NCBI GenBank assembly: GCA_002269645.1
Contig: NIVC01004622.1
Span: 1-40,345 of the forward strand
Direction of reading: 5' to 3'
DNA length: 40,345 nt
DNA from: Macrostomum lignano
Taxonomy: Eukaryota
Both the position numbers and the translations under genes were made by a program. This document shows, piece after piece, positions 12,501 to 18,500 of the stretch. The notes beneath the pieces are model-generated. The model searched no databases. It had not been told where the DNA came from and saw only the letters and a list, made by a program, of their open reading frames with translations. Positions within the stretch are counted from its first letter, which is position 1. Each line of letters opens with the position of its first letter.

Positions 12501-15500
12501 GCTGTGTATTTCCAGATCAACGGTCAACAGAAAGCATCACTTGCATTCTTCTCTAAGTCGACCACCGTCACGTGACCGTCGCAACCGTACACCAGCAGAG
12601 CCAGCTTAGATAGATGAATTTTCAGCTGCATCTCGGAGTCCTCGGCAAAAACTTCGGGAGAAGCGGCAACGTTGGCAGATAAAATCTGGTCTTCGGGCAC
12701 TTCGTCCTGCGATTTTATTATAGTACGAGTATGTTTTGCATTAAATTCAAATTAAAGTTAAAATCAAAGTACATTTGATCCAACATTCGCGTGCGATTTG
12801 AGAAGATACTTCAAGCAAATCAAAATGCAAAAAAACGATAAATCAAAATCTGTTGCTTCTAAAATTTGCGTGATATTGCGTATGCATTTGTTTAAATAAA
12901 TAAAAAGCAACACGTGAAAAAGAGATTGTAAAAAAATAATAAGCAAAATTTCAACAGCCCGCAGGTCCATTGCAGTAAATAAATTTATGGAAAACGTTGA
13001 TTTGTTATAAATTGGTTGCTTAAATACAATTGTTCCATCCCACAAATTTGAAGTTTTGCAATCAAGGCTCATCAAAGCTTAACTTTGCTTTAATTAGCTT
13101 GTAAATAAATTGGATCGCCTAAAAACAGAATTTTGTAAGGGCTGCTGGGGACACCTCATCTGGGCGCTGGTTCACTGCCTCCTCAATAGCTCTCTGCTGA
13201 GCCAAGTGCCTGCTGACACTGGCCATGCTGAGCCTCCACAGGGCCGTGCCCTGACGCCCCTGCAGCTGCTGTCGTTGCGGCAGAGAGGCAGTCAAGTCAA
13301 CGGAGGACTTCGGGCCTCTGCTAGTGAAAGCGACCTCAGATTCGGGTGTCACAGATCTCTGAGACTCAAAGTGCTGCTGAGGTTGCTGTCCCTTCTGTGT
13401 GGATCGAGTTTTCATTTTTGTATTAAATTTTACCTTTTTATAACCTTTTAAACATACGACGCGATCGACAAAAATGGTGACAACAAAATAAAGCAGTTGC
13501 GGAGATGGAAAAAATGCCTGTGATTTTCATTAAAAAACGTTTTAAACAAACGAGTGACATACGTGAGTATACAGAGCTAAATAATTGCTTTTCGAGTTCG
13601 ATTAAAACAAACCTCATCAACATTTTCGAACACTTCTTGAGCCTGCTCAGCTATTGGTTGATCCACTATCTAAACATGATTTTTAACGATAGAGAAGGTT
13701 TTTCAGCGATATTTCCCCTGCGCCACTTTAAGTAGCGTATAAAGTGCATGCTGGTTAGATTTATTTACCGATTCTTCCTCGTGTTTGCGATGAATCTTCG
13801 CGGTGGCAGAATTAATTGATGCGTTGATGCGGTACGGTGGTTTATAAGTAATTTCAATTGTAGAATTAGTTTAACTGTATAAAATACCTGACGTAGTTTG
13901 CTGTACTTTTCAAGCTTTAGTGACAAACGTACATACATATACACATGTAGCAAAAGAGTACATAGTACATGTACTTTAGAGTTCCAATTTGTGATCGTTA
14001 TTATAACATTTAGATTTAACTCCGCGCCGTTATTCTCAACTATTTTAACAAAAATTGGTGTCTTTGTGATGACACTTTTTGCGACTTGATTCAAGCATTT
14101 TTTCTTTCGTTTAATTATGCTTGACTACACACACGAAACATAAATTCAGAACAACAGAATTGGAGTTTTGAACACTAAATCCCAGCAAATTCATTTAACT
14201 AATATTGATTTGGCACTTAATTCAAACAAAAACGTGCAGTTCAATACGTAATATTATAGTTACCTGGGCGACTTGGGGCATATTCTGAACAAACATTGAC
14301 ATTCTTCGTTTAGCCTAAACGAATAAAAATGAGAAATCGTCCAGATATTTTAGTTAGCGTGGGAATTAAATTCTGTACACTAACTACTTTGAATAATAAA
14401 TTGTTGGCATGCCTCAATACGTATACGTATACGTTGTACTTTACTGAATAAGTTTTGCAAATTTAAACATGCACTGATTAAAAAAATAATCAACAAAAAC
14501 AAATTTAAACGGTTTTTATAAATATTTTACCTTCTTGTAAAGTTCCATGAACTGAAATAATATTATTGTCACATTTTTGATCGAATAATTTTTTGCAAGT
14601 AAAGATCCGTCTGAAGTGTTCGAATGATTAAAACAAATCTAACTACATGTAAGTGCTCGTAGTTTGTTAATATTTTCCGTGATTTTCTTTAATCTAGTTC
14701 TGCTTGAATTGGCATTCAATTCTGGGCAGTAACTTACCGACTGTTGCGCCAAACTGCTACCAATGTCCACTGATAGTCTGCGCTGAGTCTTACAATTGTT
14801 GAAAGTTACAGTGAAGTTGACGTTAATTTTTATTACTCGGTAATTTTTTTATTTTCAAGCAAAAACGCCTGTGACATGCTTCCAGTAGTATTTCCAGCAT
14901 TTTAGCCCGTTGAAGAAAAAATAAAGAAAAGAGCTAGCTACTAAAAATACCTCCGTCCGTTGCAGAGTTGCTTGTTTGATTCGAAGCTAAAAAGAAGTTT
15001 TAAATTATTAAAAGGACGACGCTTGATAAAATATCAAGAAATCAAATCAGAGCCAATACTTCTTTTACTAAATATGATTTTCAAAACTGACTTGTGCAAG
15101 TGAAAATAATCTAATGGTATACCTGTCGTTTTTCTTCCTCGGAAATATCGGCCTGGTTTGAAAAATTGGCACCGATTTGAAAATAAACAACTTAAACAAG
15201 TTAAAATTTAATTAAATAACTTTGTCTTCGTGAATTCGACAGAGAAATGCAACTATAACAAAAAATCAACTTCAAACTCTAAGAAAAGTTACTAAGGAAA
15301 TCAAATTTGGCAACAAAAATACCTTCTTTAATTCTTCAAGAAAGTTTTCCTACAAAATTGGGAGGGGTAAAATAAGAAACATCAAATGTGCCTTTAAAAA
15401 CTAAGGTTAAAACTGTGTGACGCACGCATAAAAAACGGACAATAGAAGAACTTAAAAGAAAGGGAATTAAAGTACGCATTGTACCTTGGCTTCTCTGGCG

Positions 15501-18500
15501 GCCAAATCCGCCATACCCGCTAGAGAGGCTTGGGTCTTTTGCTGCTGAAATTCAAACAGAATTTAAGAGGGAGATGCCTCTAGCTGGTTTCGTGGGACAC
15601 TGACAAAATATAAGCGTCATGGTATGAATTGGAATCCATAGTCTATGGCAGAGAGCCTGTGGTATAGTGTCTATGGTAGAGAGTCTATGGTAGAGAGTCT
15701 ATGGTAGAGAGTCTATGGTATAGTGTCTATGGTAGAGAGTCTATGGCTGAGAGCCTGTGGTATAGTGTCTATGGTAGAGAGTCTATGGTAGAGAGTCTAT
15801 GGCTGAGAGCCTGTGGTAGAGAGTATTTGGCAAAGAGCCTGAGGTATTCTATGGCGGAAAGTCTATATCAATTAGCTAAAGCTAATAGTTAGTACAAACC
15901 TGATTAGTTGGCAGCGGGTACAGCAGCAGCTGGCGAGTGCTCTTGCCGATGGTGTAGAACCGGGGCCGCTCGCCGCCGAACAGGGTGCAGCCGTAGCCGC
16001 TGGCGTCCAGCCTGTAGGCCTGGCGCTTCACGGCGCTGTCTTCGAACAGGCCGCGATTGGGGCCATAGAACTGAGCGGGATCTGGGAGATAGATTTGGGA
16101 GAACATGAGCTGCGATTTCTGACCTGTAAGTAGCTCGTATCTCTGCCCACACTCCTATATAGAAATTATAATCTACCCCATCTATACCCCTCTCTATACC
16201 CTCCTCCCTTTACCCTCCTCTTTTTACCTTCCTCTCAATACTCTCCTCTCAATACCCTCCTCTCAATACCCTCCTTCCAATACCCTCCTCTCAATAACCG
16301 CCTTTTAATACCCTCCTCTCTTTACCCTCCTCTCTTCACCTTCCTCTCAATACCCTCCTCTCAATACTCTCCTCTCAGTACCCTCCTCTCAATACCCTCC
16401 TCTCAGTACCCTCCTCTCAATACCCTCCTCTCTAGACCCTCTTCCCAATACCATCCTCCCACTACCCTCCTCCCAATACCCGTCCCCTTTGCCAGAGCCC
16501 AACACTCACTCTTCATCAGCTCGTCACTGATCTCGAAGAATGTCACGTGACCCGGATCGTTCTGTCCGGGCAGCTTGGCCAGCGCCAGCACCTGGATTGC
16601 ACCGTCTTCACACCGACACCGCAGACCGACATGTCCTGCACCTGGCCGGGCACCGACACCCCGCCGAGAATGTCGAACGACTTCGACGGACGAGCCCAGC
16701 CGACAAAAGCTCGACCGTCGGCTGCCGCGGTGACGAAGAGGCGCCCGGTTGGATCCACAACGACCTTGGCCACCGGGCAGCCCTGGTGCAGCTGGCGGCG
16801 GCAGAGGAGGCGCGGCTCCCGCGGCTTGCCGAGGTCCACAGCACTCACTGAGCCATCCCGACCGCCCACCAACACGACGTTGGCGGTAGGATTGCCAGCG
16901 AATGAGGCAGCCTGCGATTTAACAGGATTGGGACTGACTGACTGACTGACTGACTGACTGACTGACTGACTGACTGACTGACTGACTGACTGACTGACTG
17001 ACTGACTGACTGACTGACTGACTGACTGACTGACTGACTGACTGATTGACTGACTGACTGACTGACTCACTGACTGACGGACTGACTGACTGACTGACGG
17101 ACTGACTGACTGACTGACTGACTGACTGACTGACTGACTGACTGACTGACTGACTGACTGATTGACTGACTGACTTACCTCAACGTCCAACTCCAACGAA
17201 GACAGCAAGGCTCCTCCTGAGTTCGAGTCCCACACCTGGACCAGACCATTATCTCGGACGGACTAAAAGTGAATTTTTTAAATGAATTTTAATCATGTGA
17301 TATTGCTTTATTTCATACTAATAATCTCAGGTTAACCCAGCGGCACAAAAATATTTGAGTTCACAATAATCTCATCATTAACCTTCTGAGCACACGATAA
17401 TCCCAGGATTAACTATCTGAGCACACGATAATCCCAGGATGAACCATCTGAGCACATGATAATCCCAGGATTAGCCACCTGAGCACACGATAATCCCAGG
17501 ATTAACCACCTGAGCACACGATAATCCCAGGATTGACCATCTGAGCACACAATATTCCCAGGATTGACCATCTGGGCACACAATAATCCCAGGATTAAAC
17601 ATCTGAGCACACGATAATCCCAGGATTAACCATCTGAGCACACGATAATTCCAGGATTAACTTTCTGAGCACACGATAATCCCAGGATTAACTTTCTGAG
17701 AACACGATAATCCCAGGATTAACTAAGGTCAACCAGCTCAAAGCTCACCGCAACGAGGCAGCCGGACCCGCCAGGCAGGCTGGCAGCTCCGACAAAGCCG
17801 CCAGAGCGACAGCGGTACAGCGGCTGCGTGGCGGCCGAGGAGGAGCTCGCGCTATCGTCGACATTCAACAGGCAGATGCCGCCTTCGCTGCTGCCGATGG
17901 CCAGCTTAGCGTGTCGGATGTTGGCGCTCAGGCTGCACACCGGGCCGCTGCCAGCGCTGTCCAGCTGCTCAACACCGCGAACGTAGAAGTCGCCGCCGCC
18001 TGGCGCGAAAGTGACCAGGTGCAGGGAGTCGCCGGCGGCGTACAGGCCGCGGGTGGACAGGGACAGCTGGTCGAAGGACACCGGATCCGCTGGCGCCGCC
18101 GCCGGGGCCGCAGGCTCGGCTGCCACCTGCAGAATGGCGGGAGTTGTTGTGTCTGTCTGTCTGTCTGTCTGTCTGTCTGTCTGTCTGTCTGTCTATCTGT
18201 CTGTCTTAGTGTCTGTCTGCTGTCTGTCTGCTGTCTGTCTGTCTGTCTGTCTGTCTGTCTATCTGTCTGTCTTAGTGTCTGTCTGCTGTCTGTCTGCTGT
18301 CTGTCTGTCTGTCTGTCTGTCTGTCTGTCTGTCTGTCTGTCTGTCTGTCTGTCTGTCTGTCTGTCTGTCTGTCTGTCTGTCTGTCTGTCTGTCTGTCTGT
18401 CTGTCTGTCTGTCTGTCTGTCTGTCTGTCTGTCTGTCTGTCTGTCTGTCTGTCTGTCTGTCTGTCTGTCTGTCTGTCTGTCTGTCTGTCTGTCTGTCTGT

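Follow-up and report, generated by a model that had tools for sequence, protein, structure and literature searches.

We analyzed a stretch of 40,345 nucleotides (nt) of the genome of the flatworm Macrostomum lignano (contig NIVC01004622.1, assembly GCA_002269645.1; hereafter 'the window'), which carries on its minus strand, from ~21,400 down to the window start, the gene for the axonemal protein CFAP43 (WDR96), interrupted at 15899-12707 by a long interval that contains a chain of very small open segments. The assignment of the host gene to CFAP43, made in an earlier note on this DNA, is borne out by a match of Pfam PF25828 (CC_Cfap43, E=7e-73) to the minus-strand exons at 10659-4830, which encode the C-terminal coiled-coil domain, and by matches of the exons either side of the interval to the WD40 region of CFAP43 chains in the PDB (9fqr_H8, 9d2f_Y, and 8j07_i6; E=1e-12 to 9e-8); Pfam WD40 also matches neighbouring exons (E=1e-6). 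The solved mammalian CFAP43 homologues are 1,665-1,682 amino acids (aa) long, and of the other CFAP43 exons in the window the shortest has ~70 nt and the longest more than 300 nt. The protein is one of the subunits of the tether/tether-head complex, by which the inner dynein I1/f is held to the axonemal doublet (PMC5921572, PMC5921573), and its loss in humans leads to sperm flagellar defects (PMC5814398). The interval between the two flanking exons is 3,193 nt, and, as had been reported, a direct join from 15900 to 12706 is in frame, with phase 0 on both sides.

Within this interval lie eleven minus-strand segments, each preceded by AG, followed by GT, free of stops, a multiple of 3 in length, and in phase 0-0: that is, ten micro-exons of 21-60 nt, totalling 381 nt, and then one exon of 240 nt. 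All eleven are found, with these properties, where the earlier note had placed them, and joining them by coordinate reproduces the spliced 207-aa peptide quoted there; so too, the acceptors of micro-exons 8 and 9 are AAG, and the introns of the chain, described as AT-rich and without minisatellites, are 92-349 nt long and 26-36% in guanine-plus-cytosine (GC) content, with trivial short repeats only. The first 127 aa of the encoded insert comprise 61% E/K/Q/R/A/L and 3% P+G and are probably helical; the last 80 aa, which are rich in Q/S/R/P, are probably disordered.

The definition of the segments is, by itself, a permissive one. At 31% GC content, either dinucleotide, AG or GT, is encountered once in about 19 nt, and many short frames contain no stop; we estimate that ~36 chance candidates with the bare properties (AG..GT, multiple of 3, open) are expected per 2.4 kb of such DNA, and the interval contains 24 in-frame open candidates when any GTR donor is allowed. 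Because the bare properties arise so easily, we used statistics that are independent of the selection of the segments. The pentamer AGGTA, corresponding to a donor AG/GTA (the slash marks the exon-intron boundary), occurs in 8 copies on the minus strand of 15560-13395 and in 0 copies on the antisense strand, vs. an expectation of 1.5 +/- 1.2 from 1,000 dinucleotide shuffles, 0 of which reach 8, and 7 of the 8 sites are donors of listed exons. Across the 40-kb window the pentamer occurs 24 times on the minus strand and 15 times on the plus strand; in 2,166-nt segments clear of this region, on either strand, its maximum is 5, with counts of 6-7 only in overlapping segments. A fixed-rule exon caller, in which every AG/GT counts as a donor and is paired with the closest AG upstream that has an AG-free zone of 30 nt or more before it, reproduces eight listed exons to the nucleotide, each of them open and a multiple of 3. 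Shuffled sequences yield 0.53 +/- 0.70 in-frame open exons under the same rule (maximum 5 in 2,000), 21-27% of the calls elsewhere in the window are in frame and open, and the outcome is stable for zone thresholds of 20-40 nt. An AG-free zone is expected downstream of a branch point, and the claimed acceptors are the first AG after 33-79 nt without AG, exon 5 only by way of an alternative acceptor at 14788. The caveat in the earlier note that the multiples-of-3 pattern is partly selection-biased is correct for the bare properties, which are not significant alone, and does not extend to the selection-independent statistics, which are significant.

Codon content and base composition point in the same direction. 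The summed codon log-likelihood ratio (LLR) of the ten micro-exons is +41 bits, vs. -122 +/- 20 bits for stop-free intron segments of the same lengths, in a test that is partly circular inasmuch as its noncoding model was trained on the claimed introns; frame 0 is the top-scoring frame in 9 of the 10. Composition at the first codon position is G 0.34 and T 0.12 in the chain vs. G 0.38 and T 0.14 in the gene's confident exons; T accounts for 19% of micro-exon bases vs. 37% of intron bases, and purines for 60% vs. 47%. The 240-nt exon is an open frame of 60% GC within a 31% GC background, with a third-position GC content of 0.66, an LLR of +79 bits, and the other two frames closed. The phases of entry into, and exit from, the chain agree with those of the flanking CFAP43 exons. 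We conclude that, with high probability, the exon chain is real.

Several findings weigh on the other side. Measured against the confident splice sites of the window (13 donors and 11 acceptors, curated by eye), the chain is poor in G at donor position +5 (2/11 vs. 10/13; p=0.012), at donor position +3 (1/11 vs. 8/13), and at acceptor position +1 (3/11 vs. 9/11), and its third-position GC content is 46% vs. 73% in confident exons. Coding scores are uneven, the weakest being that of micro-exon 2 (LLR -6.5), with exon 4 negative too, and the circularity of the LLR test bears on all of them. The 207-aa peptide, searched as flanks plus chain, has no homologue in 5.8 billion proteins, the 240-nt exon has 0 matches in 1.84 billion representatives, and the chain has no match in Pfam or the PDB, so conservation at the protein level cannot confirm that the segments are coding; very little from this organism or related ones is present in the shared protein databases. 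The departures from consensus are mostly on the intron side of the donors: the exon-side AG is kept in 9 of 11 chain donors, and 9 of 11 exons end in AAG, CAG, or GAG, codons for the three residues (Lys, Gln, and Glu) that prevail in the peptide and, at the same time, triplets that supply the exon side of a donor site. Among the acceptors, C at position -3 is rarer than in the confident set, and micro-exon 2 has 16/20 pyrimidines upstream of its acceptor. The weak intron-side donors, non-consensus acceptors, and low third-position GC content suggest exons that are young and/or regulated, as opposed to ancient and constitutive; they do not prove alternative use.

Table 1. Features of the CFAP43 interval and its flanking exons, in window coordinates.
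Feature	Position	Strand	Length (nt)	Acceptor	Donor	AG-free zone (nt)	Remarks
3' part of upstream CFAP43 exon	15900-16070	minus			CAG/GTTTGT		ends in phase 0; WD-blade-like (weak DCAF1 alignment)
First sub-intron	15545-15899	minus	355				14-nt minisatellite at 15640-15824
Micro-exon 1	15485-15544	minus	60	tttcag/	AAG/GTACAA	33	GC 0.58; LLR +18.6 bits
Micro-exon 2	15323-15349	minus	27	ttttgtag/	AAG/GTATTT	42	ENFLEELKK
Micro-exon 3	15123-15152	minus	30		CAG/GTATAC	38	LLR +9.2
Micro-exon 4	14951-14986	minus	36		GAG/GTATTT	35	
Micro-exon 5	14738-14782	minus	45		TCG/GTAAGT		
Micro-exon 6	14531-14551	minus	21		AAG/GTAAAA	59	FMELYKK
Micro-exon 7	14264-14314	minus	51		CAG/GTAACT	58	possible homologue in L002
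Micro-exon 8	13888-13914	minus	27	aag/	CAG/GTATTT	59	LEKYSKLRQ
Micro-exon 9	13769-13795	minus	27	aag/	TCG/GTAAAT	79	IHRKHEEES
Micro-exon 10	13613-13669	minus	57		GAG/GTTTGT	48	
240-nt exon	13155-13394	minus	240		GAG/GTGTCC (weak)		80 aa, Q/S/R/P-rich
Read-through tail of 240-nt exon	13089-13154	minus					11 codons, stop 13121-13119, ATTAAA 13094-13089
Downstream CFAP43 exon	12545-12706	minus		aatcgcag/			starts in phase 0 (DEVPEDQ..); 3' half aligns to PDB CFAP43

The age of the chain was assessed with relatives of the gene from one metagenome contig in ENA (L001, L002; ERZ25878582 ctg82254) and from one further contig (L005). Six loci were obtained when metagenomes were scanned with the conserved coiled-coil exon; of these, L005 alone spans the site, and L004 stops short of it. 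A metagenome scan with a nearby WD exon found no relative. Identity between the CFAP43 sequences of the relatives and that of the window is 69-81% in the coiled-coil exon that is most conserved and falls to ~30-45% across the WD exons. In both L005 and L002, a phase-0 intron is present at the same place within 2 aa (two alignment columns). The intron of L005 (..KPKK/gtataa...ggtag/PNSKDSF..) is ~95 nt and has no room for an exon; the intron of L002 (..PPKK/gtgaga...tgcag/EFSKDSY..) is ~490 nt and has at most one candidate exon, of 60/66 nt. Mammalian CFAP43 has ~132 aa across the stretch vs. 105 aa here without the chain. The short orthologous introns and the mammalian length together indicate that the 207-aa block was added in the lineage of the window, and the lineage specificity supposed in the earlier note is, on this comparison of genomic sequences, upheld.

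The candidate exon of L002 (6245-6310, plus strand) is open, in phase 0, and bounded by a good polypyrimidine acceptor and a GAG/GT donor; its product, (HK)AKRRSTFKKNMAKGEQNSME, is similar to micro-exon 7. The Smith-Waterman score of the pair is 43 (P ~0.02-0.05), marginally above controls. Micro-exon 7 (AKRR...) may accordingly be older than the rest, with a similar exon carried by L002 in the same place. The tblastn search of related loci that the earlier note had suggested was unproductive: the chain matches nothing in any of the fetched loci or in the rest of the window. For ENA ERZ25878582 ctg82254, public gene calling relied on a bacterial-style caller with genetic code 4 (TGA=Trp); since the contig is eukaryotic, the 'proteins' P0005 and P0015 are exon-plus-intron read-throughs.

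According to the explanation that we consider best, to which we assign a probability of about 0.72, 15899-12707 is a single ancestral phase-0 CFAP43 intron that acquired eleven real coding exons in this lineage. We infer that the exons are spliced into the CFAP43 mRNA. Inclusion of all of them would place an extra 207 aa between two propeller-region exons that encode WD repeats, with the frame intact, and omission of any subset would likewise keep the frame. An exon that arises in a phase-0 intron is tolerated only if it is symmetric, which would explain why every exon is 0-0 and a multiple of three; the pattern would then be the trace of a stepwise recruitment of intronic sequence. An alternative origin would be the gain of introns at AG/G sites of a K/E/Q-rich insert. 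The proposal that the exon-intron units are tandem duplicates or derive from minisatellites was rejected, the units not being copies of each other, as was the proposal of copying from a neighbouring gene, since neither the rest of the window nor the fetched loci contain a copy of the block; an origin by duplication or local copying is thus unlikely. Within the window, no repeat or transposon source was detected. As for the position of the insert in the protein, the earlier placement at a WD40 loop is sound in that the block lies between WD-repeat exons of the propeller region, and less so in its choice of a particular loop, which depends on a weak alignment to DCAF1 that puts the junction just after a beta-strand; a location in a propeller loop would fit this alignment.

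Acceptance of the exons leaves the manner of their use to be considered. The earlier note proposed a modular cassette, in which the same CFAP43 exons are skipped in many combinations to give isoforms that differ in the propeller-loop insert. This is a special case of acquisition of real exons by an ancestral intron, and we consider it possible but less likely than not. The symmetry of all eleven exons, the weakness of their splice sites relative to constitutive ones, the tandem in-frame acceptors at exons 1 and 5, and the precedent of TNNT3 exons 4-8, which are alternatively spliced (PMC2447309), are in its favour; symmetry, however, is obligatory for any exon born in a phase-0 intron, and so does not show alternative use, and with introns as short as these small exons can be constitutive. 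Regulatory motifs do little to help: TGC, the DNA form of the UGC motif that marks regulated neural micro-exons, shows no excess (28 vs. 33 expected) and is within 20 nt upstream of only 2/10 acceptors; k-mers of the UGC, branch-point-like, and polypyrimidine types show no enrichment over shuffles in the interval; and GCATG, the core of an RBFOX-type site, which is present on the minus strand at 14879, 14472, 14412, 13751, and 13228, mostly in chain introns, is enriched only marginally (5 vs. 1.7 expected, P=0.03). GAAGAA/AAGAAG is marginally enriched as well (P=0.02). The exons could equally be constitutive in this species, and the view in the earlier note that CFAP43 joins 15900 directly to 12706, with the chain as a hidden cassette, is not supported as the normal course of splicing. 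A more elaborate version, in which the phase-0 intron served as a nursery for about eleven successive symmetric exons that now form a combinatorially spliced module changing the CFAP43 propeller surface in the dynein-I1 tether, so that this surface would differ, for example, between sperm flagella and other cilia, strikes us as doubtful.

We weighed two further alternatives. The exons could belong to a different transcript, either an alternative CFAP43 3' end reached through the 13155 donor, which would encode a truncated propeller-plus-tail protein, or a nested same-strand gene that starts from an ATG in exon 1. The 13155 donor is the poorest of the set, the frame beyond it stays open for 11 more codons to a stop, with ATTAAA 25 nt later, and exon 1 holds an ATG in the context GGTATGG; if the donor were unused, the tail of the 240-nt exon could possibly serve as an alternative terminal exon and so truncate CFAP43. 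We nevertheless consider a different transcript improbable: exon 1 has a good acceptor preceded by a 33-nt AG-free zone, as in an internal exon, the entry and exit phases both fit CFAP43, which for an unrelated gene would be a ~1-in-9 coincidence, and ATTAAA is common by chance in AT-rich DNA. The remaining alternative, that the segments are chance look-alikes found by searching a plain 3.2-kb intron, draws on the ease with which the bare properties arise, the lack of homologues, the weak splice sites, and the low third-position GC content. It fails to account for the results with shuffled sequences, 0 of 1,000-2,000 of which equal the real interval in copies of AGGTA or in in-frame fixed-rule exons, for the complete absence of AGGTA from the antisense strand, for the lack of any other stretch of the window that comes near the minus-strand count, or for a 60% GC open frame of 240 nt scoring +79 bits in 31% GC DNA; we judge it very improbable.

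Individual splice sites show further features. Micro-exon 1 has a tandem in-frame NAGNAG acceptor (tttcag/CAG/CAA), the second site being 3 nt downstream (15541). Micro-exon 5 has a tandem acceptor, taag/ACTCAG/CGC, with the in-frame alternative 6 nt upstream (14788), which would lengthen the exon to 51 nt; it is this upstream AG, and not the 14782 acceptor, that follows a 47-nt AG-free zone. The donor of micro-exon 10 shares an intron hexamer (AG/GTTTGT) with the 15900 donor of the upstream CFAP43 exon. This is unusual: the other 12 confident donors have A or G at +3, and the 15900 donor has T.

Elsewhere in the gene, small in-frame segments with AG/GTA donors are found on the minus strand at 10020-10058 (39 nt) and 8819-8839 (21 nt, SSQTRLQ), in a 3.2-kb gap between a CFAP43 exon end at 10351 and an exon start near 7190; they may be further small CFAP43 exons. 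The introns and intergenic DNA of the window are full of minisatellites (e.g. 69 nt x 5.9, 14 nt x 13, 14 nt x 21, and 4-nt arrays), which are located at 12107-12508, 15640-15824, 16189-16481, ~16950-17170, 18260-18700, and 1296-2321, and further at 2706-3659, 26749-27342, 31059-31670, and 34215-35959, and which yield long spurious open reading frames (ORFs) with repeated peptides (SVSQ, TDRQ, LGYLDADSR, and others). The micro-exon introns are exceptional in the window in being without them. A neighbouring gene on the plus strand, 29641-31016, encodes 3-hydroxyisobutyrate dehydrogenase (Pfam NAD_binding_2 and NAD_binding_11) and has at least two exons with an AT-rich intron between. A comparison of the window with Rfam gives no match.

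About 200 codons of CFAP43 would escape annotation based on ORFs or on homology. If transcripts confirm the chain, it will be an exceptionally clear example of the origin of numerous coding exons in one intron of an old, structurally constrained gene, useful for the study of exon birth and of why intron phase dictates symmetry, and a subunit of the dynein-I1 tether would carry a large insert, specific to this lineage, with the potential to tune the motility of cilia or sperm. The possible production of many isoforms, and the possible stepwise birth of the exons, make up the biologically interesting part; if the exons are ordinary constitutive ones, the chain is an annotation detail only.

Four known systems offer comparisons. 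The chain resembles the neural micro-exons of the SRRM4/nSR100 type, which modify protein surface regions, in having very short in-frame exons. The SRRM4-type exons are 3-27 nt long, usually single, and deeply conserved, with UGC just upstream of the acceptor, whereas only 4/10 of the CFAP43 micro-exons measure 27 nt or less, and the block shows neither conservation nor enrichment of UGC. The micro-exon genes (MEGs) of Schistosoma, with which the earlier note had compared the chain, contain runs of very short frame-keeping exons (3-81 bp) with much longer introns, and their central exons can be dropped; they are schistosome-specific, whole small genes, almost wholly made up of micro-exons, that encode secreted proteins with an N-terminal signal peptide (10.1101/2023.06.21.545858). 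The likeness holds for architecture, a tandem run of ten short symmetric exons with longer introns, and not for signal peptide, secreted product, or sequence relationship: the CFAP43 array is inserted into the interior of an axonemal protein that is large, conserved, and intracellular, only 381 nt of CFAP43 coding sequence are in micro-exons, there is no leader, exon 1 being an internal exon with an acceptor that is entered in frame from a CFAP43 exon, and protein searches and Pfam give no peptide match to an MEG family.

The other two systems are closer. Species-specific exons are reported to be, for the most part, alternatively spliced (PMC2592719; PMC2077895). Like newly created lineage-specific cassette exons, those of the chain are symmetric and absent from the orthologous intron of relatives, and have weaker splice sites and a more intron-like composition, as seen in their third-position GC content; unlike them, they number eleven in one intron, whereas the known cases are mostly single and often derive from transposable elements. 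The resemblance to exons 4-8 of TNNT3, the gene for fast skeletal troponin T (PMC2447309), is that of consecutive small in-frame exons in an otherwise conserved structural gene, encoding a charged variable segment outside the conserved core. The troponin T mini-exons, by comparison, are experimentally alternative and conserved among vertebrates, whereas the CFAP43 block, a putative cassette array, is longer (11 exons, 207 aa) and lies inside the propeller region. By analogy, the CFAP43 chain would work more like the mini-exon block of troponin T, or like lineage-specific created exons, than like MEGs, and would be another case of small symmetric exons that encode a variable insert.

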